Virus record (IMG/VR): IMGVR_UViG_3300017971_000001
Location: 62,001-126,000 of that record
Direction: 5' to 3' (one strand)
DNA: 64,000 nt
The notes beneath the pieces are model-generated. The model worked only from the letters and a program-made list of their open reading frames with translations, was not told the DNA's origin and did not search any database. Within the stretch, counting starts at the first letter, position 1; every line of letters begins with the position of its first letter. The position numbers and the translations under genes are program-made. This document shows, piece by piece, positions 1,390 to 62,166 of this stretch.

Positions 1390-3508
1390 AACCCCTCCAT
1401 GAGTTCTTCCGTGCGCGTATCCCAAAACAACTGGACCCAGTCGCCCATGTTTCCTTGATTCTTTCGTTGGTAGTCGGCCCAGAGCGTCGCGCTCCCCATG
1501 GTGAAGCTAATGCCAGAGGCGAACGTATAGGACGAAAAGGAGAAGTCGCTGAGCGAAAGGGAGAACCCTTTCCCAAGCCCTGCTGAATATGCAGAAGACA
1601 GCCCCCTGCCGTAGGCCAGAAAGCTGAGCAGGGGCCGGGGGCGAAGCCGGCGCCGTCGCCTCTTCATAGGAAGGCTGATCCCATGCGGTAGTTCAGGCCG
1701 GCACCCACGGGCGCTGATCGCTTCCAACTTTCAGAGCAGTCATAGGGAAAGCGGCCGGGTCTAAGCCTCCAGAACGACATGGAGCGGTTGCCCCCCTTCC
1801 CCCTGACCCGATCCTGACCCCAGCCAAGCGCGAACTGACTCGAGGGCGGGTGGTCACGAAGGTAGGTTCGACGGCGTCGTTTCAAGTCGCCAATCCGAAG
1901 AGTCGAGGCCGGCGAACCTGACTGGAACCCAACGCTTGCTCCAGCCCCCGGCCGAACGATAGCCCCCTGCCGCCTGCACTGCCTCGGGCAAAGTATCCGC
2001 CTTCTCCGCGCCGGCACTTACCCCTGCCAACAGGCCTCCAGATCCCGATCCCGCGTTGGGACCAAAAGAGGCAGCGTGCCTTGCTCTTGCGTCGCTTCAT
2101 TGCCAGAAAGACCTCGGGAAGGTCATGGCCCAACTCGCAGCGCGAAGCTGTCCCCTGCCCTGCCTCGAGAACAGGCCAGCCCCGCTGTGATAGATCGACG
2201 GGGTAGGGTCGAGCTCGGAAGAGCGCGTCCATGCCAGAGATTTTCCTATTCCCTTCCCCCTCATTCTGACCTTGGTGATCCGGCACCTATGCCTTCTCTT
2301 CATGCAGCGAGCCTCTTCGTCCAGGATCCTTCTCGTCCTAGACCAGCGCCCCACTTCATGATCAAGCCGCTGCCGAACCCATACCCCCAGAGAAGCAAGG
2401 AGGACCCACGGCCAAGCGCGGTTGACCTGCGAAGGCCTCGGCCCCGAAGGGAGGCCAGTCTATTTCTTCGGCGCCTGCTCATGGAAACATTCCAATTCCA
2501 AAAGGGATCCGAAATCCGTTGCCGACCGGGCGGCGCTGACCATGGCCGAGTGAAGAACGGCGGCGGCGGGCCAGGCCGCGCCCGAAACCTCGAGACAAGC
2601 CCTGACCCTTTCCTTTGTTGAGTCCTACGACCATTCGGAACCTTCGATCCCTACGCTTCATGCTGACCCATGGGACCGGCCTAGCCCAAAAGAGATCCAG
2701 AGATAGACCCCTGCGCCTACCGAGCACCTAAGTCCAGATCGGATCTCGCTGACGCCAGCGCCGAGCCCAACGTAAAGTCCCCGAGCTCGCTGTCGGTATC
2801 TCGATACGACAACGCTTGGCCTGCGACGACGCCTCACCAGATCCTCCTCCCCGGGCCCGCCAGGGAAATGCCGAGGCCGTAACCGAGGCTTCGCCCGACC
2901 CCTCTGTTCGCCCAAGCTCGAAACCTCCCGCGGCGGCGAGAGACGCCCCTCCCCATTCGGCCCCTAATGGCCGTGGCGTAGCGCCAATGAAGACAGCGGG
3001 GTCGACGCCTCTTCACTTGAACGGCCCTGCGAGCGCGTATCCAGATCCGTAGCCGGCGCCGCGTTTTGACATGATCATAGACCCCACCCCGACCGCCGTT
3101 CTCATTCCTGCTCCACGTCTGCGCCGGCTGCCCCAGCTAAGCTCCCAATGCACGGTATTCCTTCTGCGGCGCTTCACGGAAGCGCGCACCAGAATCTTCG
3201 CAGGCCCGAGCCGAAACTTTCCCACTCTCCCCGGCCTCGGTATCGCCGGAAGCCAGCCCCGAACGTCAAGCTCTGGCCGCTTACCGCGCGAATCCAGATC
3301 GACAGGTGGCGCTTCCGTCGCTTCACGGGTAACAGCCAATCCCGACGCCCTTCAGCGTTCCCTGGCCAGTGTTTCTCCAGGAGCCCGCCCCGAATGAACG
3401 CCTGAAAAGCCAGTGCCTCGTTCGAGACCCTCCGCCGGAAAAACAGGCTGTGCCGACGCCCAGGAGGTCCAAAGCGTAATTGAACGGAGGCCTTCTGCGT
3501 CGCTTCAC
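1386..3508 (-). other. Cluster A: 11 tandem MxRRRR / Gly-rich peptide genes
   Basis: Members (-): 3323-3508, 3174-3326, 3013-3177, 2834-3016, 2658-2837, 2479-2661, 2300-2482, 2097-2303, 1882-2100, 1664-1885, 1386-1667. Each begins (M/V/L)-x-R-rich run, carries GxG motifs and overlaps its neighbour by 4 nt. Confidence 0.85.
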
Positions 3509-5089: not shown

Positions 5090-5595
5090 TTGGAGCGCAC
5101 CCAGACCTCGAATTCCATATCGTGGTCGTCGTGCTTGCCGGCCGGCTCGCTCTTCCAAACCGTCCTGAACCAGTCGTCGTCGAGGAGTTCGCTGGGGAAG
5201 AAGGAGCCTCCGCCTTCGACCTCGGTCTTCACGACCGTGCGCAGAACCTTCGTCGCATGAGGAAAGGCAGCGCGGTAGATCTGCTCACCGCCGCAGACGA
5301 AGACCTTGCCGTCGCCGAGGACTTCCGCCAGGTCCAGCGCGCTGAGGATATCGGTCGAGACCATGACGCCCTCAGGGACCGGGTATTCGGCCCTGCGCGT
5401 CATGACGATCGTCTCCCGCCCCGGAAGCGGACGCGAGCCGATCGACTCCCAGGTCTTGCGCCCCATGATCAGCGGGCACCCAGCGGTCTTGCGCTTGAAG
5501 TACTTCAGATCGGAGCGCTGGTGCCACGGCATTTTTCCGCCCTTGCCGATCACGTCGTTCAAGGAGGCCGCGACGATCAGAATGACTTCAGACAT
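5086..5595 (-). CDS. folA: Dihydrofolate reductase
   Basis: LIVAASLNDVIGKGGKMPWH..SDLKYFK..T...LIMGRKTWESIG.RPLPGR..IV.TR and FVCGGEQIY motifs. Confidence 0.97.
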   Translation of the reverse strand: MSEVILIVAASLNDVIGKGGKMPWHQRSDLKYFKRKTAGCPLIMGRKTWESIGSRPLPGRETIVMTRRAEYPVPEGVMVSTDILSALDLAEVLGDGKVFVCGGEQIYRAAFPHATKVLRTVVKTEVEGGGSFFPSELLDDDWFRTVWKSEPAGKHDDHDMEFEVWVRSK

Positions 5596-5836
5596 TGGGG
5601 TCCGCCTTCGGAACGAACGTGGGGCCGCGGTAGCCGCAGGTGCAATTCGGCCAGGGGTTATGCCCGCAGCGAGCCTGCTTGCGGAGCGTCTTGTTCTCGG
5701 CTTCGAGCTTCGAGATCCGTTCGCGCAGCGCTTCGATCAGCTGCGGAGCGTGGATCGTCGGCCGCTTGTCGCCGCGGGGCGCCTTCTCGCGAAAGTAGCC
5801 GCAGCCGGCGTATTCGCTGTTGTCGAGATCGATCAC
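5588..5836 (-). CDS. Hypothetical protein
   Basis: Coupled ORF in minus-strand chain. Confidence 0.6.
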   Translation of the reverse strand: MIDLDNSEYAGCGYFREKAPRGDKRPTIHAPQLIEALRERISKLEAENKTLRKQARCGHNPWPNCTCGYRGPTFVPKADPNV

Positions 5837-6225
5837 TCGCCGATCAACTCCAAGACCTCGACCGCGGCGACGTGGTGCTGCGTCGTCGTCGCCCAGGACC
5901 TGAGCGTGGACTTGAGCGCTCCCTCCTTCGCCTTGAGCGCCGCTTCGAAATCTCTGGCCGCTCGATCGAGTTCGGGCTGCACGAACTTCTTGAACGCCTC
6001 GTCGATCAGAGGGGCAGAGATCTCCTTGACGAACTCCTTATCGTTCAGCTGGAGGATCACCTCGAACGCGAAGAAGGCGAGCTCAGGGTCGATCGCGCGC
6101 TGGGTGCCCCCCCAGATCAAGTCCCGCTCGCGGCGGATCCGCTCGTAGATCTCGCCGTCCTCTCTGCCTTGAAGGATCTCCAGGAAGCCCTTGTCCTTCT
6201 CCTCGCCTTCCTTCTCTTCACTCAC
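5833..6225 (-). CDS. Hypothetical protein
   Basis: Coupled ORF, high GC3. Confidence 0.7.
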   Translation of the reverse strand: MSEEKEGEEKDKGFLEILQGREDGEIYERIRRERDLIWGGTQRAIDPELAFFAFEVILQLNDKEFVKEISAPLIDEAFKKFVQPELDRAARDFEAALKAKEGALKSTLRSWATTTQHHVAAVEVLELIGE

Positions 6226-6899: not shown

Positions 6900-9800
6900 T
6901 CAACGAACACCTCTGACGCACAAGAACCCTCGATCCGTTCCACGTCCGTGCGTCCTGATTTGCCCTCTGCCGAGGAATCTGGCAGGAATGAATCCGCAGG
7001 AAATGGAGCGCGCTAGACCACGAGACGTTCGCTGACCTCTGAATCCAGAGCTCGCGAACAAGCGGAAGCGTCGGCGGTGCCTGATCACGCGACAACCATA
7101 TCGAATGTCTCGGACATGTTCACGGAAAACATTGGTTCAACACGATTCCGCGAGACCCGACGATTCCGCGAGACCCGGCGACGCCGTTTCCGATCGAGCG
7201 ACTGAAACCGCACCCCTGACTGGCCCGTATGCTGAATTTCCTGAGAAGGGGATTCAAAGCGGACCCCTGCCCGGCTCCGACATAACGTCTAAGTCCATGC
7301 GATCGGCCCCGCTGTGTCCCAGGGGTCACTTGGACGTGAAACATGAAGTTGATACTCCGCTTCCTGCGATTCAGCGCAACTCCCTCACCGTCTTGCTCTG
7401 TCGGCCCTGAGTCCCCGCCCGCGGTTCCGCTGGAAACCGCAGCCATGGCGGGCCGTTCGATACAGCCTCCGGACCGGGTTTCCTGGTATTCCAAAGTCGT
7501 TCGTCGACCCCGATCCGATCGAGCAGCCCAGGCCCCTGGCGCGAACTCTTAGCCGCCTGGGCAGAGGCCCTCTCGTCATGCTTCTACAGCGCCTTCTTCT
7601 CACACCCACGAGGAGCACGTCCAACCTGAGGACCGAAGGAGGCCGAGTCCGTAAACTCGATTCTGAGCCCTGCCGAACATGGTGATCTCGATTGGCCAGC
7701 GACCCGTCAGGTCCGCATTCCCGACCGACCGGAGCAATCCGCGACCGCGAGTCCACTTCCTCAGGCGCCTCCTCCTCAAAACGGATCGAGTCCTAAGCCC
7801 CAGCTGAAGAAGTCGCCTCGGCCCTCAGGGCTTCTCATTCCGCTTCCTTGCGATCGGTGAAGGCCGAACGACCCGCCGAGCCTCAGTCCATACCCCATGA
7901 GCGCGGGGGTCAAGTTGGTCCGCAGGCGCCTGGATCGACTCATGTTCGTCCTGACCAGAGGCCAACATTTCTGAACAGGCCCGATCCAAACGACGCCGTC
8001 TGACCCGTCCCCAGAGATCGGTTGAAGAGGAATGTGTATCCAGGCGTTGGGCAGCCCCAGCCGTGACCTAGCTTCAGCCCGAACCCGAAAAAGTCATAGC
8101 GCGCCGCTCCGCGACACCTCCTACGATTCATTGAACAGGCCTCGAAAGCGGTGAGATCCAAAGCCCGAGACTCGACCCAGCCCGAGGCCGGCGGCGATTC
8201 GGACCAGAGTCCCGCCCCAGTTGGAGTAGGTGAAGCCCCATTCGCAGTGCGTGCCGGCGCCGAGGTTTCCCAGGCGTGCCGCGCCCTTATTTCTTCTCCG
8301 GCGCTTCATTCTGATCCCTGGCCGCACCCGAGGTCGTGATCAAGTCCAATTCCGGAGTGAAAGCCGACTGCCCGCGAGGGGACCTCCATGCACCCAGACC
8401 CGAATCCCCAGGCTCTATCTCGTCCGTAGCCCATGGCGCAGTCGCGTCCGATACCTCCGGGCGACAGTGAGAACCGCGCCCGTCGTCGGCGATTCCTCAT
8501 TGACCGCGCACCCCTCGCCCATAGTCGCAAAGCAGTCCGAGCCCGTAGAACGTTACCGTCGCCGCGACGCCCGGCGAGAGGGGAAGGCCTTCACCGAAGG
8601 CGACGCGAAGCCCAGTGGCTGCGTGGCGCCTCTGGCCGCGGCCTCTAATTGGCCCCCTGCAGACCACGACTTTTCGCCGGAGCCGCCGCGTCAACTTTCG
8701 ATCCCCTCGCCGCGGTAGAAAGCCAGTCCGTATCCCCACCACACTTTCTTGGTGCCCCTTGAGACACTTCCTCCCCCGACCGCAATTCTGAAGGGCCCTT
8801 TGATCCCGCCGACTCCCCAGCACTTCCAGGACCCATACCCGCAACGCATTCCATGAATGGAGAATAGATCGTCGGTCTTGGTGAAGAGGCCGCCCTGCGC
8901 TCGCCGTCGTCTTTTCATGGAACAGGAATCTCGAAAGTTAGAGTGATCACGCGCGGAGGCGCGATCCCGTTCGCAATCAGGGTCATGGTCGTCGTGCAGC
9001 GCGCGTTCCCCTGGCCGTTGCCTGCGAAGTATCGCAGTCCGCTCGAACCAGGAGCGAACACAGGGAACTTGCTGAAGCCTAGGCCGACTCTGCGGAGCTC
9101 GAGCCCGAGCGCTCGGAAGTGCCAGCCGGAGTGAATGCGGCGTCGTCTGCGGTTCATGGGAGAACGTAGTCTCCGAATCCGTAGTAGCGCGTCGTCTTCC
9201 AGTCAATCAGGGACCCCTTCTCGGACAAGGCGTCCGCGACCGCTGCGGGGGAAGGGTCGCTCGGAACGTAAAAAGTGACGAGCGGGGACTCCGCAGCCGG
9301 CCTCGCAGTCAACTCCCGTTCCTTCAGACTCGCCCTGGCCCGATCCGTCGAAGCTCCTGAGGCCCAGGCCTATGTTTTCCCATAGCCCGTAGCCAGAGGT
9401 CGAATAGGTTGCGTCGAGCCGAACTCGCCGTCGCCTCACCATGAGGAATCGCTCACGATCGCCATGCGGAGGTCAACGACACAGCGCTGAAGCCCGCAGC
9501 CCATAGAGAAAGCCCGAGAGGAACCAACAGCCCGCTCGGTGGACCTGCCCAAGAACCCGAGGCAGGTGTATTCCGCGTTCGACAGACCGCGGCCTAGTCC
9601 TTTGCCAATCCCAATGGACCAGCGCCTTTGGACCGCAGCAGCAATTCTGGATCTTCTCTTCATATCGACCAACACGTTTCGCGCATAAGGCCCCGCCCGA
9701 TCATGGACTCGCAGCCCGAGCTCAACTCGTCGGGGAAAAAGCAGGCGCGTCCGAACGTCAACCCAAATAGACTCCCTCCCGACCCGAAGGAGCTTCGCTG

Positions 9801-22065: not shown

Positions 22066-22524
22066 TTAGAACTTCTCGGGGACCTCAGGATCGTAGGGAG
22101 GAATGTGGAGGCCTCGCCTACGGAGCTCCTCTTTCGCTCGGTCAAACTGCTCGACCTCGACGTTGGACTTCGACTCGACAAGGGCAATGCCCGAGGTCCG
22201 GGCGATCAGGCCATTGCGAGCGCTCAGCGGATCCTCGACGCGAGCGTACGCCCAGCGATCGGCTAGGAAGATCTTGTTCCCGTTCTCGTCGGTGAACCCT
22301 AGCACGCCATGCATGCTGCGAGTGGGTCCGCTCTTCGTCCACCAGGTCGCAGCAGCGCTCCCTCGGTCGTCGTATCGAACGACGAGCCAAAGATCGCCCT
22401 GAAGAGACCCGCTCTCAGAGGCGGCTTTTCCTTCGTTCACGCAAGCAAGCGTGATCACGTAAACGCAGGTCAAGAACACGAGGAGCGCAAAGGCAGAGAG
22501 AACGATTCGATCGTTCTTGCTCAC
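22066..22524 (-). CDS. Membrane-anchored protein (paralogue of 22853-23308)
   Basis: N-terminal TM; shared VVRY.D.G...A.W.TK...F.D..G....L...Y....DP. Confidence 0.7.
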   Translation of the reverse strand: MSKNDRIVLSAFALLVFLTCVYVITLACVNEGKAASESGSLQGDLWLVVRYDDRGSAAATWWTKSGPTRSMHGVLGFTDENGNKIFLADRWAYARVEDPLSARNGLIARTSGIALVESKSNVEVEQFDRAKEELRRRGLHIPPYDPEVPEKF

Positions 22525-45767: not shown

Positions 45768-46541
45768 TTACGATCCGAGCAAGACCTCTGCGATCCCGTC
45801 CGAGTCGATCACGACGCCCTCGAAGTAGAGGTCGTCGAGCGCATGACCCCACACTCCAAAATGCTCATGCCGCGCGTAAATGTCCCGATAGGTACGCGCA
45901 ATCGTCCAGAGAAAGTAGCCGGCCGTCATGATATTCGACCGCTTCCACGACTCTTCACCGCGGGTGAACTCGATTTCGTAAGGCTGAATCGTCAGCTTGA
46001 CCGATCGCATGAACGGATAGCTGAGCGTGGTCTCGATCGACCGCGGCTGGAAATCCGTCCAGTTCGTGTTGGGGTCCTTGATCTCCTCCTCCTCGACGTG
46101 GACCAGCGTGGTCATGCGATCCGCCTGCTCGAGCGTGAGAGACGCGAGCGTGTCCAGGTGCAAGTAGCAGAAGAAATTCCCGCACAAAGGCTCCGGACGC
46201 TGCGCCCTGACGCGGCGAATGTAGACGACGTCGTCCCGATCGAACTCCGGGATCTCGCCGTCCTTGAGGACGGAGATCCGCTTGCCCTGGTCTTCCTCGT
46301 CCAGGCTCAAGTCGTCCAGCGGCTTGTCGTCAGGAAGCAGGTAGACCGAGCGCGTGCGAAACCGATCCTCCAGCGTGCCGTCGATCAGGGCTTCGATCAT
46401 GGCTCGCTCCTGGGCGTCGCCTTCGTCCTGCTCCGAGTAGACCTCTTCCCGCTCCACGGCGGGCAGGTTCACCTTCTTGGTCACTTCCGGCCGCGGGCCT
46501 CGCGAGGGCGGCCAGTGCTCGGGATAGTCGTAGTTCTCCAT
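45768..46541 (-). CDS. Hypothetical protein
   Basis: 257 aa, C-terminal GVWGH.LDDLYFEG. Confidence 0.75.
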   Translation of the reverse strand: MENYDYPEHWPPSRGPRPEVTKKVNLPAVEREEVYSEQDEGDAQERAMIEALIDGTLEDRFRTRSVYLLPDDKPLDDLSLDEEDQGKRISVLKDGEIPEFDRDDVVYIRRVRAQRPEPLCGNFFCYLHLDTLASLTLEQADRMTTLVHVEEEEIKDPNTNWTDFQPRSIETTLSYPFMRSVKLTIQPYEIEFTRGEESWKRSNIMTAGYFLWTIARTYRDIYARHEHFGVWGHALDDLYFEGVVIDSDGIAEVLLGS

Positions 46542-46570
46542 AAGAAAAGCCTCCGCCTTTCAGCGGAGGC
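46542..46570 (-). terminator. Intrinsic terminator
   Basis: GCCTCCGC/GCGGAGGC hairpin with TTTTCTT on the minus strand. Confidence 0.6.
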
Positions 46571-46606
46571 CAATCTATCAGCGGGTGGCGATCGAGGAAG
46601 TCGGGG

Positions 46607-47563
46607 CTAGGCGCCGGCTTCCTCCAGCTGGACCACGACGATCTTCAGATCGCTGAGGTAGGGCTTGTAGCTCGAGGGCGAGCGAATGAAGGCCGCCTCC
46701 TTGCCCTCGGCGTGGAGGTTCCACGCCTTGGCGAGGATCACGGACTTCATTTCGTTCGAGCGGCGCTTGGCGTTGGCGAACCAGGACTTGGCGATCGAGA
46801 TCGGCGAGCGGACGTTGCCGTCGTTCCCGCGCGCGACCTGATTCAGGAACTCCTCGACCTCGGACGCGGGGTTGCCGCAGGAAATGAGCCAGTAGTGCGC
46901 CGCGGCGTAGGAGACCGCCGTGTGCCCCCGGATCCCGTTGGTCGCCTTGTAGGCGAAGTTGACCGACTTCTGGATCTGGGCGTCCTTGCGGATCAGGTCG
47001 ATCTTCTCCTTGTGCGGGATCTTGCTGCGCGTGCGCTCCCGCTCCTGGATCAGCGTGCGAGCGAGGGCCATGGCCTCCTTGCCGTTCTTGAGGCCCTCGA
47101 TCTTGGCGACGTCGAAGGCGCTGCGGACCTTGCCGAGGTCGTAGTTGTAGACCTCGTCCACGGGGCGGTTGAGCAGGATCTCGACGCAGGCCGTCTTGCC
47201 AGACTTGATCACGGCGCGACAAACGTGCTGACCGTCAGCGAGCTCACCCTTCACGTTGAACTTGATCGGGTCCGTGCGGACGTGGTCGCCCTCGTTGAGC
47301 GAGCGAGCGATCTTGTCGACGTGCGCCTTCTGGAACTTGCGCTGCGCCGAAGCCATGAGCTCCAAGAACGCCGTAGCCCGGTCGACCGTGAGCGGGAAGT
47401 TGCTGACCCGGTCGCCCTCCGGGTCGATCGAGGGCATGCCGTTGACGACGTTGTAGCGCGGAGCGCTGTACTGCTGCAGCAGTTCACCGATCCGGTTGGG
47501 GTTGATCACCTTGGGGGTGTCTTCGGCCTTCTTCTTGACGACCTTGACCTTCTTCTTAGCCAT
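46607..47563 (-). CDS. ParB/Srx-like N-terminal domain protein
   Basis: QRKF...HVDKIARSL..G......DPIKF...GEL.DGQH...AVIKSG; the R of DGQHR is replaced by V. Confidence 0.75.
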   Translation of the reverse strand: MAKKKVKVVKKKAEDTPKVINPNRIGELLQQYSAPRYNVVNGMPSIDPEGDRVSNFPLTVDRATAFLELMASAQRKFQKAHVDKIARSLNEGDHVRTDPIKFNVKGELADGQHVCRAVIKSGKTACVEILLNRPVDEVYNYDLGKVRSAFDVAKIEGLKNGKEAMALARTLIQERERTRSKIPHKEKIDLIRKDAQIQKSVNFAYKATNGIRGHTAVSYAAAHYWLISCGNPASEVEEFLNQVARGNDGNVRSPISIAKSWFANAKRRSNEMKSVILAKAWNLHAEGKEAAFIRSPSSYKPYLSDLKIVVVQLEEAGA

Positions 47564-47590
47564 GAGCTTCTCTTCTCTTCTCCGGCGGTT

Positions 47591-48742
47591 CTAGGAAACA
47601 GTCTTCCACACGTCCTTGCGCGCAGCGAGGTAACCCTCCCACCACTCTCGGTCGACCTTCTTGCGGGTGAAATCGCTGGGAGCGGGGGGAATGTAGTGCG
47701 CGTGGTTCAAGTGAGCCAGCGCGTAAGGCTTGGGGGCCACCTGGCCGTAGTGGTCGTAGTAGGCCACTTCGTGCCAGTGGCTGAGGAAGAGCTTGCCGAC
47801 CCAGCGCAGCGCGCGGGCCTCGATCTGGCCCGGCGGCAGCTGACCCTCGGCCAAGATCTTCTTCTGCTTGTGGTTCGGAACGTCCTTGAGCGTCTGGGCC
47901 GCCTGGTCGCTGAAGTCACCAGCTTCGTTGCGCACGACGAGGCGCGCCTTGTATTCGCGGTAGAGCGGGCCGTAGTAGCTCTTCTCCTTGTTGGAGAAGA
48001 CGCGGATCCGATCCCCGATCTTCCAGATCAGCACCTTGGCCCGCGCGTTCCAGGGCCGCATGGCGACCGCCTTGCGCAGCAGTTCCTTGGTCAGCCGGAT
48101 CTCGTCCTCGCCCTCGTCCTGGAGCAGAAAGCGCATGCGCTGCTGCAGTTGCTGCGGCTTGATCCCGACCTTGATCGCGATCTTGTCCACTTCGGCCTGG
48201 GTCGGCTTCTTGCCCTTCACGTTCTGGCTGACGATCCGCTCCGCCTTGGCCGAGCTCTGCCAGTTGACCTTGCCGTCTACGCCGCAGAAGCGCTAGAGCG
48301 ACCCGGCAGTCGGGGCGCGCGTAATGTCGAGGTAGGCGATCAGGCCGCCAGCGAACACTTCGCCGAACCCGAAGAGGCCCAGCGTCCAGCGCCCCGTGTG
48401 CGACTGGCTGGCGTAAGCCTTCATGGCCATTTTGATCTTGGCCTCGAGCTCGACGTAGCGCCCGCCGACCCAGGACATGAACAGGTTGGGCTCCTGGTCC
48501 TCGGCCGCGGCGCGCTCGCGGTTCTTGTGGCTCTTGCGGTCCTCCTGGATCTGGTAGTAGGTGTCCACCAGGTAGCGCGCCTCGTCGCGCTCGAGCGTGG
48601 CCGCAGCCTTGCGCAAGTCTCCGTTGAGCCGGCGCGAGAACATGCGCAGTTCGCGGAGTTCTCCAGGCAGCGTCGACTTGTCGTCTTCGTCGGGGAGAGG
48701 GAGCGTCGCGCTCCCCGCCGTGAACTTGCTCTTCTTGGCCAT
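47591..48742 (-). pseudogene. IS110/Nop-domain protein lacking RuvC (TasA-like), interrupted by an in-frame TAG at 48293-48295
   Basis: Track ORFs 48293-48844 and 47591-48220 are in frame; GFGEVFAGGLIAYLDITRAPTAGSL*RFCG (stop at the expected Trp), PWNARAKVLIWKIG, YYGPLYREYK, ARALRWVGKLFLSHW. Confidence 0.7.
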
Positions 48743-48839
48743 GTTGTCCCTTGCTTTGGGCTTCCCGTTGTTCGCGGAAAAGGAAAGTATCAGGCCGCTC
48801 CGACAAGTTGTGGAGATCTGAGATAAGTCCAATACTCCG

Positions 48840-48881
48840 AACAAGAAGCGAGCCCGAGAAGATCGCTCTTCTCGGGCTCGC
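48840..48881 (-). terminator. Intrinsic terminator
   Basis: GCGAGCCCGAGAAGA-loop-TCTTCTCGGGCTCGC with a TTCTTGTT tail on the minus strand. Confidence 0.75.
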
Positions 48882-48977
48882 CGTGGAGGTCCTGCCCCGG
48901 CATTCTGCCGGCTCGGATCTCTATGCCCGCCAGTGCTGATCGCTCAGGACGGCGGGCAACATTGTCTGCTGGCTGGT

Positions 48978-50191
48978 CTACTCGATCTTGAGGTTGTCCA
49001 GAAGGTAGGTGCGAACGGCGTCGCGGAGCCTGCTCGAGTCGTTGATCCGGGATCCGAACCTCCCCTTGTCACCGAAGGCGGCACGGTCCTTGTAGAGGAC
49101 CATGACGAACTCCCTGCACTGGTCAGGAGTCAGAGGCCTTCCGCCGAAACCTTCGCGGCACGCCTTGCCGAGCGCCGCGAGCATTTTCGTCCCGAAGGCG
49201 ACCTTGCTGCGGCGCGAAGCGCTGGACTTGGAGGTGTTGCCGTGGTACGAGAACCAGCCCCTGAGGCTGACGAGCGAGGCGATAATCGCCTTCGCCTGGC
49301 TGAACACCCTCTCCTCGAGAACGACTCCGTTGTTGCTGTATCCGCGCTTCGAGCGCCCCTTGGTGAGGCCGGCGAACAGGTTGTGGATCTGCGCACCGCC
49401 GATATCGTAGGGTCCGCCATGGGAGCGCATGAGCGCCTTGATCCGCATGGCACAGTTGGTGTGACTCGCCTCGAGCGTCTCGATCTTGGTGACCAGAGTC
49501 GCCTTGCTGTTGAGCTTCAGGAAGAGGTGGCGGGCATACTCCAGCGGCATGCCCTTCACGACATGGCAGTAAAGAGACACGTCGGCGACGGCGAACCCAG
49601 CGATCCGGTGCTGGCCGTCAGAGATCACCAGGACGTAGAGCCGCCACACGCCGTCAGCGTCCCTGAGCTTCACGGTCGGAACGTTCTTGACGGGGAACTC
49701 GTCGAAGGGGATCGCGACGATCAACGGCGCGGGCATGAGTTCCCCGGCCAGGGCGTCGCGAGCGATATCCTTGATCTTGTGATCCTTCAGGCCGCGCTGA
49801 AAGCCCAGCCCCGGGAACCTGTCCGGCTGAAGCTGACGCAGCTGCGAAGCTGATCGGGGTTGAGCTCGACGCGTTCCTCGACCTTGTCGCGCAGGTCGAA
49901 GGTCACGTTGCTCGTTCCGAAGCCGGGGATCGAAGGGCTTGCGTCGGGATTGGCGGCTCCGACGGGGCCTTCGTTCGCCGGGCTCCCTCCGTTCCAGCCC
50001 AGATCCTCGGCATGCCGAAGGATCTTCCGCTGGTTCTCTTCCTTGGGGGTCGTCTTACCGGCCAGGTAACGAGAGACGGAGCTCTGGTCGAGACCAATCG
50101 CCCGAGCGACGCCGGACTTGCTCTCGCCGTTCTGGCTGAGAATCCATTGAAGGGCCGACTTCCAGTCGTCCTTGAAAGGGGTGCAGTTCAT
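48978..50191 (-). CDS. XRE-HTH plus DGQHR/ParB-like domain protein, split by an apparent 1-nt deletion near 49847
   Basis: SKSGVARAIGLDQSSVSRYLAGKTTP (HTH); the downstream frame is open upstream of its ATG and reads ...GFQRGLKDHKIKDIA...ISDGQHRIAG. Confidence 0.7.
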
Positions 50192-50205
50192 ACAAAACCT
50201 AACGT

Positions 50206-50256
50206 CGATTGCTTTCGCTGTGACGGTTGTGCCGATAGCTTTCGCTGTGGCGGCTG
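50206..50256. promoter_or_regulatory. Direct repeat (27-bp period) upstream of the HTH gene; candidate operator
   Basis: CGATTGCTTTCGCTGTGACGGTTG / CGATAGCTTTCGCTGTGGCGGCTG. Confidence 0.5.
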
Positions 50257-50356
50257 CTTTCTGATCGAAATGATTCTCAGCAGCAATGGCGGGCTTATTG
50301 ATCGCAGTGATACTCGCCCTGGAATTTCACCGAACCACGTGTTCGGCGAAGGGACT

Positions 50357-51160
50357 CTAACTAACTTCGGCCCCCCATGAAACCCATCCCTTCCTTTTTT
50401 TTCTGGAAAATAGCTCGAGCCTTCGCTCCATGTGAGGCCAGAGCTCTTCAATCTTCTCGTAAATGCTTTCCGGTTTCTCGCTGTGCGCGCCGACAGGGCC
50501 CTCAAGCTCAGCGCTCACGGACGTCGCCCCCTTTGCCCGGGGCGCGCTCCCCTTGATCGCCAGGGCTACAGGCTCGTAGCAACTCCTGCTATAGAAGCCC
50601 ATGCCGACGTAAAGCTTCCCGCTCTTGTAGGTCTTCCTCCAATTGAAAAGCTGGCCGGTCTTGAACTGGAAACCCCAGCTTTCAATCACCTTGATCGCTT
50701 CGGGGGTCTTGGGGCCGGTGTACCACATGATCAGCACGCAGTTTTCAGCGGCCAGAGAGTCCACAGGAAGCGCGGCGATCTCCTCCACCGTCATGCAGTA
50801 GTACTGGTCCTGGGCCTTACCCTGCTCCCCCACGCGCTTGTATTTCCAAGGCGGGTCAACAAGGATCAGATTGAACAGGCCCTTCCTGACATGCTTCTTC
50901 CTGAGGGCTCGCAGGCTATCGACAGTCTCCAGGAACGAGATAGGCTCGATCTTCTTGGTCCCGAAGTTCTTGGAGTCCTTCGGTTTCTTACGAGCCTTGC
51001 CCTTGACCTCGCCTTCCTTGGGCTCCCCCTTTGCCTTCTTGCGAGACTTGGAGGCGCTCTTCTTAGGAGGTTCGGAGGCGGACGGCTCCCCCTCGGAGCA
51101 CGTCCTGCGATTGTGTCCCTCCCCGCCGCACTTGCCGCACCTGACGATTCGCTTCTTCAT
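50357..51160 (-). CDS. MT-A70 family N6-adenine methyltransferase with N-terminal zinc knuckle
   Basis: LILVDPPWKY, Y.CMTVEEIAALPV, WGF..KT...W.K, HSEKPE, LELFSR; N-terminal CGKCGGEGHNRRTC. Confidence 0.92.
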   Translation of the reverse strand: MKKRIVRCGKCGGEGHNRRTCSEGEPSASEPPKKSASKSRKKAKGEPKEGEVKGKARKKPKDSKNFGTKKIEPISFLETVDSLRALRKKHVRKGLFNLILVDPPWKYKRVGEQGKAQDQYYCMTVEEIAALPVDSLAAENCVLIMWYTGPKTPEAIKVIESWGFQFKTGQLFNWRKTYKSGKLYVGMGFYSRSCYEPVALAIKGSAPRAKGATSVSAELEGPVGAHSEKPESIYEKIEELWPHMERRLELFSRKKRKGWVSWGAEVS

Positions 51161-51194: not shown

Positions 51195-51937
51195 GTGGCA
51201 GGTAAATAGGCCCCTGTCATGAAGGCCGCATGGCGGAGCGAAAGCAGCGTGACAGGTAAATAGGCCCCTGCCAGGACTTGTTGCTCGAGTCCGCCGCCGA
51301 CCAAGCCCTCGGGCTGCTCAGTGTGACAGGTAAATAGGCCCCTGCCAGGACTTGTTGCTTGGGGTCAGCCGCGGAGCAAAGGGAGTCTGCTGTCGTAGCA
51401 GGTAAATAGGCCCCTGCCAGGACTTGTTGCGACCTCGCCCCTCGTCGAGGTCGTCGGCGAGGTGGCAGGTAAATAGGCCCCTGCCAGGACTTGTTGCCAC
51501 CCGCCGCCTCAAGGGCGGCTCTCGGTATCAGAAGTGGCAGGTAAATAGGCCCCTGCCAGGACTTGTTGCCAGAAAAATCGCCTCCTACATATAGGGGGTC
51601 GCCCTCAAGTGGCAGGTAAATAGGCCCCTGCCAGGACTTGGTGTGTCATGCAGCACTTCTTGGACGCGATCAAGGTTGCCCGCGTGGCAGGTAAATAGGC
51701 CCCTGCCAGGACTTGTTGCCGGCACGATCCCGCTCGCGACGCTGGAGTCGTGGCAGGTAAATAGGCCCCTGCCAGGACTTGTTGCCCGCTGGGCAGAGGA
51801 GGCAAAGGTGGCCTCGGGTCTCGTGGCAGGTAAATAGGCCCCTGCCAGGACTTGTTGCGGCGCTCAATCGCGATCGCAACGCGCCGCCCACCGACCCCTC
51901 TGTGGCAGATAAATAGACCCCTGCCAGGACTTGTTGC
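51195..51937 (-). CRISPR. CRISPR array: 10 full 36-nt repeats plus 1 degenerate terminal repeat; 9 full spacers of 30-43 nt
   Basis: Plus-strand consensus GTGGCAGGTAAATAGGCCCCTGCCAGGACTTGTTGC at 51249, 51323, 51395, 51462, 51534, 51609, 51684, 51750, 51823, 51902; degenerate copy at 51195. Transcribed sense GCAACAAGUCCUGGCAGG-GGCCUAUUUA-CCUGCCAC forms a 3' hairpin ending in AC. Confidence 0.98.
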
Positions 51938-51947
51938 GCCGTGCCTC

Positions 51948-54071
51948 CTAAGCCTCTTCGCCGCCTTCGTTTTTGCGCTTCATTTCGAGCGCTCGCTTTT
52001 TCGCAATCGTCTTCCTCCTTCGCTTGTTGGGCTTTTCGCTGTAAGTCCACACCTCGTCCGGCTCGAGCGCCGGTCGATCCCAGTTCACCTTCGCGCCGCT
52101 CGCGGCGAGGAGGTTGCGAGACGCGTTCACGTCTCGATTCCAGGTCTCTCCACAAGAGCAGGTGAACACCTGCGCAGAGCCGAGGCTGCGGTTCCGCTTC
52201 CCGCAAGACCAGCAGGTCTGGCTCGTGTAGGCCGGGTTCAGCGTGTCGATATCCTCGAAGAAGACGTTCTGAAGCGACTTCTTGAGAACGCTCAGCGCCG
52301 CGTGCCTCTTGTTCTTGTTGATCCGGTCCTGCTTCTTGTTGTCGCCCGCCTTGTTTCGCTCTTGCATGTGCGCGAGGTTCATTTCCTCGATCACGCAGTT
52401 CTTGTAGCGCCTCCCCATGTCGCGGGCGAATCGACGGTAAAGGTCCCGCCTGCTCCCCTGCAGCTGGCCGCGGAGAGGATCGCGCCAATCGGGCCCGAGG
52501 TGGAGTTGGCGGCCACGCCAGTGCCAGAGCCAGTCGAGGCAGCTGTCCTCGTCCTGGTCGCGCCACTTCTTGACGAGCTTGGACAGCTTCTTCGGGCTCC
52601 TGAACTGGTGAAGGTTCTTGAACTCCTTCCGGAGGCCTTTCGGAATACAGCCCCGCCCTTCGACCTTGAAGTAAGCGATCAGGTTATCGACCGCTTCGTT
52701 GAAGTCCTTCTTCACGAGGCTCTGGAGGTTCTCCACCTGCTTGGCCTCTCGAAGCCACCAGCAAGGCAAAGCGACCTTGCCCTCCCTGCCGTCGCTCCCG
52801 GAGAACGTCGCGACGACGATCGAGCCGTTGTCGTAGCGCCAGCCGACGTCGATCGCGACGGTGCCTTCCTTCGCTCGGTCCGGACGGGGTCCGACGTCAG
52901 CAAGGCTCAGCTGAACCGACCACTTCAGGCGACGCCCCTCCTTCTTTCGAACGACCTTGGCGTGAGTGATTCGGACTCCCTCAGGGATCTCGCGCTTCAT
53001 GAAGAACGGGATTCGAGCCCAGACGGGCTTCTTCCCCTCACTCCTTACGCGGAGGTAGAGGATCGCGTCACCCCTCTTGGCCGCGCGGTCCCTTCCCGCC
53101 ACCCAGACGCCAGTCGGATACCGAACGATTCGGGCATGGCCCTGGCCCAGGTCGCCGCTGAAGATTACCTCAGGGGCCTGCTTCTCCCGCGACTGGTAAG
53201 TCTGGCCACCAATAATTCCAGAGCCGTCCCAACTCTTGAACTTCGGCGGGGGGCCCTTCCGGTGTTGACGGAGTGCCTCGTGACGCGTGTTCCTGGTGTT
53301 CCAGTGTAGTTCAGGAAACCGCTCGCGTCCCTCCTTGGCGGCGTCGCTCTTCGCGTCGTCGAAAGCCTTCTTGTCGTAGGAGTCCAACTCGCGCGCCTCT
53401 TTGCATATTTTTTGCCGATCCTCCCAGGCATTCTTGAGCTTTTTGTGAAGCGCGGAGATCTCCGCCCTCTCTTCCGGGGTGAGCGTATCGTCTCGATTCT
53501 TCGAGTTGCGCTTGCGCTGCTCTTCGTGAACAGCATGAAGCGCCTTCTTGATCGCTGCGTACTTCGCGTCGGCCTCAAGGATCTCGTCCTTCAACTCGGT
53601 CTTGAGCATGAACTTCATGTCAAGGTCGCGCATGCTGTGGTCGATCTCCACAGTGTCGTTGCGCATGCGCTGACTGTGGAAGAAGTGATCGTCGACGAAC
53701 TCGACGCCCTCGAGGAGCAGACCTTCTTCATGCGCACGCCGCCGCATTTCGGCGGAGATCAGGTCTTTGTTGACGCGGTCGCCTTGCTCAGCAAGCTGGC
53801 CCAGGAATCGGTGCTCATTCTCGAACCCGAGGGGAAGGGTTCGGTTCGCCGGGTACTTGTAGACCCGAACCCCCGTGTCCTTGTACTTGATACCCTTTTC
53901 CTTGTCCTTCTCCTTGGCCTTCTTCTTGGCCTTGTTCCGCTTGCGCATGCGCGCACGCTGGGCCTCGCGCAACTCTTCCTTGCTGCGCTTCTTGCGCCCG
54001 CCACGCTTCTTGGTCTTGCTCTGAGTCGTCACGACCCCCCCCCTCCTCACTTGAGCTCCCATCATACTCAC
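51948..54071 (-). CDS. cas12m: Type V CRISPR effector, Cas12m (V-M / V-U1, C2c4)-like; likely start GTG 54032
   Basis: RVYKY, LHWNT.N, F..WDGSG.IG.Q, TVAIDVGWR (RuvC-I), QFRSPKKL, RRDLYRRFA, VIEEMNL (RuvC-II), TSQTCWSCG...CSCG..WNRDVNASRNL (Zn finger, RuvC-III); directly upstream of the array. Confidence 0.82.
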   Translation of the reverse strand: MSMMGAQVRRGGVVTTQSKTKKRGGRKKRSKEELREAQRARMRKRNKAKKKAKEKDKEKGIKYKDTGVRVYKYPANRTLPLGFENEHRFLGQLAEQGDRVNKDLISAEMRRRAHEEGLLLEGVEFVDDHFFHSQRMRNDTVEIDHSMRDLDMKFMLKTELKDEILEADAKYAAIKKALHAVHEEQRKRNSKNRDDTLTPEERAEISALHKKLKNAWEDRQKICKEARELDSYDKKAFDDAKSDAAKEGRERFPELHWNTRNTRHEALRQHRKGPPPKFKSWDGSGIIGGQTYQSREKQAPEVIFSGDLGQGHARIVRYPTGVWVAGRDRAAKRGDAILYLRVRSEGKKPVWARIPFFMKREIPEGVRITHAKVVRKKEGRRLKWSVQLSLADVGPRPDRAKEGTVAIDVGWRYDNGSIVVATFSGSDGREGKVALPCWWLREAKQVENLQSLVKKDFNEAVDNLIAYFKVEGRGCIPKGLRKEFKNLHQFRSPKKLSKLVKKWRDQDEDSCLDWLWHWRGRQLHLGPDWRDPLRGQLQGSRRDLYRRFARDMGRRYKNCVIEEMNLAHMQERNKAGDNKKQDRINKNKRHAALSVLKKSLQNVFFEDIDTLNPAYTSQTCWSCGKRNRSLGSAQVFTCSCGETWNRDVNASRNLLAASGAKVNWDRPALEPDEVWTYSEKPNKRRRKTIAKKRALEMKRKNEGGEEA

Positions 54072-58353: not shown

Positions 58354-58426
58354 GCTGGAGTAGCTCAACCGGCAGAGCACTCGCCTTGTAAGCGAACGGC
58401 TGCGGGTTCGACCCCCGCCTCCAGCT
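58354..58426 (+). tRNA. tRNA-Thr(TGT)
   Basis: Acceptor GCTGGAG/CTCCAGC, D arm TAGCTCAACCGGCAGAGC, anticodon loop CTTGTAA, T loop GTTCGAC; no encoded CCA. Confidence 0.92.
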
Positions 58427-58584
58427 TGCGCAGCCCGCGACGGTCGCGGTGCGTCGCGCGTTCAAGTGGTTACGTTTTTAAAGTGAGTCAGGAACGATCA
58501 GCGAGAATCGTTAAGCGCGCGCTTCGGATACGGGGAGTCCTGCACGGCTCAACACCGACCCCCTGCAAAGCGCGCTCTCGTCAT

Positions 58585-58656
58585 GGCCCCGTCGACTAGT
58601 GGTTAGGTCACCAGCCTTTCAAGCTGGCTGCGCGGGTTCGAGTCCCGTCGGGGTCA
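58585..58656 (+). tRNA. tRNA-Glu(TTC)
   Basis: Acceptor GGCCCCG/CGGGGTC, anticodon arm CCAGC-CTTTCAA-GCTGG, T loop GTTCGAG. Confidence 0.92.
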
Positions 58657-58669
58657 AAGGAGAAGAGAA

Positions 58670-61948: not shown

Positions 61949-62166
61949 CTCTTCACCTTGGACCTTAGCTCGCGAGCGCGATTCTCATGACCCTCGGCGA
62001 GCTTCAAGAGCCTCTCTGCCCAGGCCTCCCACGCCTCTTCGACCGTGGGGTAGAACTTCGTCGACGGGCTCGCGTTGGGAAACGTTTCCTTTTCCGACTC
62101 CTCAAAAGGAACGAAACCCCCGGAGGCGGAATAGGTAATTGCCCAGCGACGGACCTTGCCGCTCAT
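61936..62166 (-). CDS. Hypothetical protein
   Basis: Coupled ATG (MSGKVR). Confidence 0.6.
   Translation of the reverse strand: MSGKVRRWAITYSASGGFVPFEESEKETFPNASPSTKFYPTVEEAWEAWAERLLKLAEGHENRARELRSKVKRWKP

Follow-up and report, generated by a model that had tools for sequence, protein, structure and literature searches.

Viral DNA of 64,000 nucleotides, positions 62,001 to 126,000 of IMG/VR record IMGVR_UViG_3300017971_000001 (hereafter the window), holds a gene that resembles tasA, which encodes a Nop-domain protein of the TIGR-Tas family (TIGR, for tandem interspaced guide RNA), but that is interrupted by a stop codon and has no guide array beside it. The question that this locus raises is whether the gene belongs to a system that is intact in the phage and, if so, where its guide RNAs (tigRNAs) are encoded. 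The source record is a 245,276-bp virus genome with direct terminal repeats, rated complete, of a jumbo phage with 62% G+C. We consider it highly probable that this phage possesses a TIGR-TasA system split over two places in its genome, the effector and a ParB-like partner gene lying in the window and a 27-unit array lying far outside it. The parts of the system are as follows, in window coordinates unless stated otherwise.

47591–48742, minus strand: tasA, a 383-codon nuclease-free Tas (Nop-domain) frame (NF052498, AlphaFold2, Foldseek)
48293–48295, minus strand: in-frame TAG, codon 150 of tasA
46607–47563, minus strand: gene for a 318-aa, DndB-like protein with a predicted ParB/Srx fold and the motif DGQHV (phrog_5931, AlphaFold2)
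48847–48882, minus strand: terminator-like hairpin of 16 pairs, 5' of tasA
46548–46571, minus strand: terminator-like hairpin of 10 pairs plus T-run, 3' of the ParB-like gene
Phage genome 185,693–186,717 (outside the window, 75 kb from tasA), plus strand: TIGR array of 27 units of about 36 nt
Phage genome 185,614–185,688 (positions 2114–2188 of contig L007): tRNA-Leu(AAG), whose last base runs directly into the first TIGR unit

The central gene is a nuclease-free TasA, a Nop-domain Tas protein. With its TAG read as Q, X or W, solely for searching and folding, the read-through frame scored 142.2 bits against the NCBIfam model NF052498 (TIGR_Tas_endo; curated cut-off 100) over model positions 1–214/215, and each half of the interrupted frame alone matched the corresponding half of the model. 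A phmmer search of the PDB returned TasR (9mty, 9.5e-6) and also TasH, the TasR alignment spanning the helix-hairpin-helix (HhH) 'LW..G' motif and a C-terminal 'H-x-H-Y-I-x-P-P' loop. An AlphaFold2 (AF2) model built on 42 homologues reached a mean predicted local distance difference test score (pLDDT) of 87.5, and the best 11 Foldseek matches to it in the PDB were all TasH or TasR chains (probability 1.0, target-normalised template modelling score 0.50–0.69). IS621-type recombinases came next, at an E-value of 0.2, roughly a thousand-fold weaker. In the model some 25 disordered and 30 helical residues (about 55 in all) precede the Nop core, and the long N-terminal helices at residues 27–111 fit a coiled coil, an arm typical of Tas proteins. 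Neither the Pfam scan nor the AF2 model contained a RuvC, HNH or serine-recombinase domain, and it is as a Tas core without a nuclease domain that we identify the frame as TasA. The original prediction, made from the sequence alone, had described a frame of about 380 codons with a coiled coil and a TasA-type Nop domain but without a DEDD RuvC or a catalytic-serine part; each of these features was recovered, and the fold is Nop-like with TasH and TasR ranked ahead of IS621.

Two further features bear on how this TasA might work. Its C-terminal loop is aligned with GGHVDYIKPP of TasR and contains H347, shared by all 42 homologues, and H349, shared by nearly all; by this alignment the loop appears to be the His/Tyr processing dyad of the dual-repeat Tas clade. 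A helical insertion of about 65 aa (approximately residues 162–228) follows the HhH motif; it is clade-specific, occurring in about half of the homologues. The possibility that this insertion conceals an intragenic tigRNA was rejected, as it is a conserved and confidently folded helical segment in those homologues that have it. Across the gene, the ratio of nonsynonymous to synonymous substitution rates (dN/dS) relative to a 96%-identical orthologue is 0.056, by which measure tasA is under purifying selection.

That orthologue (P0002, from contigs L001 and L002) is an uninterrupted protein of 383 aa, and it also clarifies the stop codon. The break in tasA is a single TAG at 48295–48293, codon 150, which lies one base from TGG, and the orthologue has Trp (TGG) at this codon. 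So do Logan contigs of runs X1, X2, X3 and X5, from four studies, which carry C at 48294 on the plus strand; in X1–X3 this position is the sole difference from the record within 46500–50300 (over 3.8 kb in X2 and X3, and 2.9 kb in X1). It is possible that the source sample is among runs X1–X3 and that two of these represent a single data set deposited twice; we therefore count the runs as no other assembly showing the stop and not as four independent strains. The affected residue, W150, is invariant in the 42 homologues and lies inside the HhH/RNA-binding core, and dN/dS relative to the L001 orthologue is low both before (0.03) and after (0.08) codon 150, at a dS of about 0.36. Recoding or suppression of TAG was considered and rejected: none of the phage's six tRNA and tmRNA genes has a CUA anticodon that would mark an amber suppressor, five of eight local genes end in TAG as their normal stop, and recoding does not systematically lengthen open reading frames (ORFs). 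The stop is private to this record, whether as an error or as a rare allele, and the phage population carries an intact gene whose broken codon, as had been proposed, was originally Trp. The gene looks like a pseudogene only through an artefact or a variant private to a single record, and tasA should therefore not be scored as broken.

The guides were found well away from the gene. Within the window, a strict-period scan and Tandem Repeats Finder revealed no TIGR array, as the original prediction had remarked of the immediate surroundings, and the only strict-period repeat there is a CRISPR array. The same scan applied to the whole genome identified an ORF-free stretch with a 36-nt period at 185.69–186.43 kb, and mapping with a profile and anchors moved its far end to 186.72 kb. 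This array comprises 27 units and a terminal repeat (thus 28 edge repeats), with 19 units of exactly 36 nt and eight of 37–41 nt. Each unit consists of a 9-nt edge repeat GAGCGAGCC, a 9-nt spacer, a 9-nt loop repeat GAnnCGAnC and a second 9-nt spacer; edge repeat variants follow [G/A]A[G/A]CGAG[C/T]C and the array consensus is GAgCGAGCC-N9-GAc.CGA.C. The last edge repeat (L007 3182–3190) runs into a G+C-rich hairpin (3188–3216) and a T-run (3217–3225), together an intrinsic terminator, and dual-repeat TIGR arrays have been reported to end likewise in an edge repeat and terminator (PMC12045711). Apart from the CRISPR array, this is the only non-coding strict-period repeat in the phage genome, where a search for isolated TIGR units or a second array gave only scattered chance matches.

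What ties this array to the TasA of the window is a comparison with a more distant relative. A 46%-identical TasA (P0004, on contig L006) is flanked on both sides by 34-nt units on the tas sense strand, and their consensus, GAgCGAGCCT-N8-GACGAgCG, has the same edge repeat as the array of our phage. When the whole genome was searched with the NF052498 profile, tasA (142.8 bits) was the sole tas gene. On this sequence evidence we concluded that the distant array probably supplies tigRNAs to the window TasA in trans; the link is drawn from the shared repeat consensus and the single Tas of the phage, not from adjacency or RNA data. Of the original suggestion that the guide is encoded elsewhere or in a non-array form, the first half has held and the second has not, the array being an ordinary one. 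Of the words sampled, runs X1–X3 contain 96% for the tasA stretch and 100% for the array stretch; no RNA run contained the locus. The L006 locus is itself unusual in its size, with more than 3 kb of 34-nt TIGR units (5094–6008 and 7309–9732) beside its tasA, or about 90 units as against the 5–15 reported to be usual. Separately, the 357-aa gene that follows the array in our phage was tried as a hidden Tas and discarded (hhalign probability 0.05).

Beside tasA lies a probable partner. The ParB-like gene starts 27 nt downstream on the same strand, and the two genes are again neighbours in L001, where the ParB-like orthologue is 86% identical, so that the proposed operonic arrangement with a ParB-fold gene is upheld. 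The strong terminator-like hairpins at 48882–48847 and 46571–46548 lie before tasA and after the ParB-like gene and thus bracket the pair as had been described, and the two genes are a bicistronic unit between two terminators. The encoded protein matches phrog_5931 (1.6e-27) and belongs to a family of 4,187 representatives (E <= 0.001) with the consensus motif DGQHR. Its AF2 model (pLDDT 86) aligns by VIA-align with ParB 7bnk (Z 7.1, root-mean-square deviation 3.0 Å, 87 residues within 52–147), and then matches KorB, PadC, Noc and sulfiredoxin; on this model the downstream partner has a predicted ParB/Srx N-domain fold. Its dN/dS relative to L001 is 0.26, more relaxed than that of tasA. Close relatives were absent from viral contigs, a word-based search yielded only the orthologue and one weak match, and a profile search against the PDB returned nothing. 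Neither of two distant family members whose phage contigs were inspected has a tas gene beside it, and a complex prediction for TasA with the ParB-like protein (P0002 with P0123) scored 0.00, which is evidence neither way. Operons of tasA and tasParB, with DndB-like DGFHR motifs and dual-repeat arrays, were reported earlier (Faure et al., Science 2025, PMC12045711, fig. S14); the pairing of TasA with a ParB-like protein is therefore already known, although the partner found here may be of a different subfamily.

The observations made here concern family, fold, absence of a nuclease, array architecture, the shared edge repeat, the intact allele and purifying selection, while RNA processing, DNA binding and silencing are inferred from published work on TasA. 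Published TasA proteins bind processed tigRNAs, use the two spacers to contact opposite strands of DNA and act as transcriptional repressors that do not cut, and TasA has been described as an RNA-guided repressor (bioRxiv 10.64898/2026.09.09.750476). Because the protein of our phage combines the Tas core, the dimerisation arm and the processing loop with a cognate array, the same behaviour may be expected of it. The array would be transcribed, possibly together with the tRNA, in which case tRNA 3' processing would free the 5' end of the array. TasA, with its His/Tyr loop, would bind the precursor, which would be cut into 36-nt tigRNAs. A TasA dimer with one tigRNA would then pair with both DNA strands, with one through spacer A and with the second through spacer B, and, having no nuclease, would block transcription or replication of the target without cutting it. 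The targets may be host genes or rival mobile elements, and the site so bound may be one on which the ParB-like partner acts or from which it spreads. By analogy with characterized TasA proteins, the system is thus expected to be a phage-encoded, RNA-programmed DNA binder with 27 guides.

Several observations weigh against this interpretation. The record itself carries the stop codon. The array lies 75 kb from tasA, whereas published descriptions place arrays beside or inside tas, the one of 2025 (PMC12045711) having covered about 5 kb around tas. The repeats, here and in L006, begin with GA and end with C(C) and do not follow the UG...CCA of TasR; since the UG/CCA box motif was derived from TasR arrays, this mismatch lowers the likeness to TasR guides but does not speak against membership. 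The motif of the partner is DGQHV (DGQHL in its orthologue), without the final Arg that is kept in at least 90% of the family. Lastly, self-targets of the 19 regular units (both half-site orders, gaps of 0–7) were not significant: one self-match had one mismatch and seven had two, and five shuffles together gave 22 with two mismatches and none with one. The best of them, and the only one close to perfect, is that of unit 15; it lies at window 22469–22491 (genome 84,469) and is formed by spacer B, a 5-nt gap and the reverse complement of spacer A, with one mismatch in 18.

Other explanations of the same features have to be set beside a split TIGR-TasA system. It is conceivable, yet rather unlikely, that the pair as such is the effector, TasA-tigRNA marking a site and, as the original prediction had supposed, recruiting the ParB-fold partner, here to spread, bridge, modify DNA or sense its modification. 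This would suit two genes 27 nt apart in one terminator-bracketed unit that are also together in L001, the recurrence of tasParB operons in the literature and the ParB/Srx N-domain fold of the partner. It gains nothing from the complex prediction, which gave no verdict, and a published AlphaFold3 model gave weak contact only; moreover, the two distant relatives have no tas beside them, the nearly invariant Arg of DGQHR is lost here, and selection on the ParB-like gene is more relaxed than on tasA. That the amber codon is real, making tasA a fresh pseudogene with an orphan array or a source of half-proteins of 149 and about 209 aa, we regard as improbable. The TAG does stand in the record, and translation could resume from a GTG at 48220 to give a C-terminal product of 209 aa, but all four other assemblies read TGG, three of them without any other difference over the stretch compared, the codon is an invariant Trp of the RNA-binding core, both halves are under strong purifying selection, and no suppressor tRNA was found.

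Doubt could also attach to the array, which might serve another function or protein unrelated to TasA, given that it is 75 kb away with no tas or ParB-like gene beside it and that the 357-aa gene just downstream has no assigned function. This is highly improbable, however, as arrays on either side of a homologous TasA have an identical edge repeat, the 9-nt repeats, 9-nt spacers, 36-nt period and terminal edge repeat with terminator reproduce the published dual-repeat layout, the 357-aa neighbour is not Tas-like and the phage has a single Tas. The notion that the frame is a degraded fragment of an IS110-family transposase draws on database labels, many homologues being annotated as PF02371 (Transposase_20) or 'transposase' and PHROG 4285 as transposase. 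We give it almost no credence: the frame has neither a DEDD RuvC nor a serine-recombinase part, scores above the Tas equivalog cut-off, resembles Tas structures ahead of IS621 by three orders of E-value, shares its short architecture with hundreds of full-length homologues, and has a cognate TIGR array.

Other genes surround the window part of the proposed split TIGR-TasA system. Between 44.7 and 54.1 kb of the window all coding is on the minus strand and the third-position G+C (GC3) signal is very strong. In transcriptional order the minus strand carries the Cas12m-like gene, the CRISPR array, MT-A70, helix-turn-helix (HTH), DGQHR-like, tasA and ParB-like genes, a 257-aa gene and an integrase, and all of the genes that the original prediction had placed in one orientation, from the DGQHR gene upstream to the ParB-like gene downstream, were indeed found on this strand. 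The features surrounding the tasA pair are the following.

51948–54071, minus strand: gene for a Cas12m-like effector of 707 aa (phmmer against PDB, PF07282)
51195–51937, minus strand: CRISPR array with 11 copies of a 36-nt repeat, spacing 66–79 nt
50357–51160, minus strand: MT-A70 family N6-adenine methyltransferase gene, the first gene of a variable segment (PF05063, 4.2e-28)
49787–50191, minus strand: XRE-type HTH gene, 134 aa (PF01381, 7.4e-5)
48978–49736, minus strand: DGQHR-like (ParB superfamily) gene, 252 aa (TIGR03187 DGQHR, 1.9e-5, below cut-off)
45768–46541, minus strand: gene for a 257-aa protein without assigned function, kept after the ParB-like gene in L001
44730–45740, minus strand: tyrosine recombinase/integrase gene, co-oriented with tasA and kept downstream in L001 (PF00589, 3.8e-23)

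The Cas12m-like protein matches Cas12m in the PDB (23vw_A, phmmer 3.5e-43 over residues 122–658) as well as PF07282 (8.8e-13), and the CRISPR array begins 11 nt after its gene. The earlier view of tasA as a second RNA-guided module thus agrees with its place beside a Cas12m-like gene and CRISPR array. Silencing, or conflict among mobile elements, would be a role in keeping with the conserved integrase and the adjacent Cas12m-type system. In this phage two predicted RNA-guided DNA binders of the non-cleaving type stand side by side, and in L001 tasA comes directly after the CRISPR array. In window positions 1–44000, by contrast, most ORFs are shorter than 300 aa, with a GC3 frame signal both fainter and patchier than that of 44.7–54.1 kb, and the Tas/Cas12m block may therefore be a compositionally distinct island.

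Comparison with known systems places this one among them. It is a real TIGR-TasA/ParB-like system, intact in nature, of the kind published in 2025. With the TIGR-TasA/tasParB systems (PMC12045711) it shares a solo, nuclease-free Nop-domain Tas, an operonic ParB-fold, DndB-like gene and a phage origin, as well as a dual-repeat array with repeats of about 9–10 nt, 9-nt spacers, a terminal edge repeat and a terminator. It differs in that its array lies 75 kb from tasA and at a tRNA, whereas the published arrays are upstream of, downstream of or between tasA and tasParB; in that the partner motif is DGQH-V/L as against the DGFHR described for published TasParB; and in that the partner belongs to the broad phage family phrog_5931, other members of which are often not beside tas. 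TasR (9mty) and TasH (9w04, 9vzx, 21kl) have in common with our TasA the Nop core, the coiled-coil arm, LW-x-x-G, the C-terminal His/Tyr loop and the 36-nt dual-spacer guide architecture, while the phage protein lacks RuvC and HNH, has the extra helical insertion of about 65 aa, and is paired with GA...C(C) repeats instead of UG...CCA. MbTasA, PlTasA and BlTasA are nuclease-free RNA-guided DNA binders and transcriptional repressors (bioRxiv 10.64898/2026.09.09.750476, 10.64898/2026.08.11.744272), and by analogy repression of this type is the likely mode of action here, although those proteins use stem-loop tigRNAs and have no processing loop, in contrast to the dual repeats and retained loop of our phage. 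The IS110/IS621 bridge-RNA recombinases share the RNA-binding Nop-like C-terminal domain; unlike them, the phage TasA is without a DEDD RuvC, a catalytic serine domain or insertion sequence ends, and has its guides in an array. Type V-M CRISPR-Cas12m is also a non-cleaving RNA-guided silencer of mobile elements, but its fold and guide type are unrelated.

The junction between tRNA-Leu and the TIGR array recalls an arrangement known from plants, whose dicistronic tRNA-snoRNA genes are processed by RNase Z. Whether TasA is served in trans by an array built as a tRNA-tigRNA polycistron, and forms with the Cas12m-like system a dedicated 'RNA-guided silencing island', seems to us a nearly balanced question, tilting slightly towards the negative. 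If it is so, tRNA processing enzymes could join tigRNA biogenesis, as they do in the plant genes.

Three features make the locus noteworthy: effector and array lie 75 kb apart, the array adjoins a tRNA gene, and a Cas12m-like system is next door. Because the genome is complete and terminally redundant, with one tas gene and one array, it provides a clean case of an effector and its guides unlinked by 75 kb. A later survey, which looked around tas loci, leaves open whether tas genes without arrays draw on another guide source, and an array 75 kb away is one concrete answer. Should this arrangement be common, then of the tas loci reported to have no array nearby, roughly two thirds of the total, many would have guides beyond the few kilobases searched. 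TIGR-Tas has been known only since 2025; for the biogenesis of its guides, and for the ways in which RNA-guided silencers are combined by phages, the tRNA-array junction and the adjacent Cas12m-type system are further leads.

The region upstream of tasA proved to be less constant than the pair itself. In L001, the conserved tasA leader comes directly after the CRISPR array, and since the MT-A70/HTH/DGQHR trio is missing there, we regard the trio as a variable insert outside the Tas module. The original prediction had seen tasA as sandwiched between two ParB/DGQHR-type genes and had treated 46607–50191 as one unit; neither proposal holds as a conserved arrangement, given that the upstream HTH and DGQHR genes are absent at the L001 site and belong to the variable three-gene segment. 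The single 'HTH-DGQHR gene' of that prediction has both of its parts, but they are two ORFs in different frames in the record. Near 49850 the GC3 coding signal passes out of the HTH frame and into that of the DGQHR gene; this point precedes the HTH stop (49787) and lies about 100 nt ahead of the ATG of the DGQHR gene (49736). Between 49730 and 49900 the DGQHR frame reads as protein-like but has no start codon, and other assemblies show no indel there. A frameshifted or programmed HTH-DGQHR fusion is possible. Atlas neighbours of the DGQHR-like protein are DGQHR, GmrSD_N and ParB_N clusters, and in a set of 5.8 billion sequences it had no relatives but itself. Directly 5' of the HTH gene start are two 24-nt direct repeats, 27 nt apart (50206–50256), which are likely an operator pair for the HTH protein.

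The tasA leader, of about 230 nt (48743–48975, minus strand), contains the terminator-like hairpin of 16 pairs, is conserved in L001 and strongly structured (fold z-score -4.65). Two C-to-U changes in its first hairpin leave the pairing intact in L001 as G-U pairs, a hint of a sense-strand, RNA-level element. A stem-loop tigRNA in this leader was considered and set aside: the loop of the hairpin at about 48955–48920, at 19 nt, could not accommodate two spacers, and the region resembles a trailer and terminator.

Other RNA genes lie at some distance from the locus. The window contains tRNA-Thr (58354–58426) and tRNA-Glu (58584–58657), the only two tRNAs and the only hits that an Rfam scan of the window gave, while 2 kb past the window end ARAGORN identified a transfer-messenger RNA (tmRNA) at 128,149–128,557 of the phage genome, with the tag ADQKAHLPTATSRA, adjoining a tRNA-Gly at 127,997–128,068.

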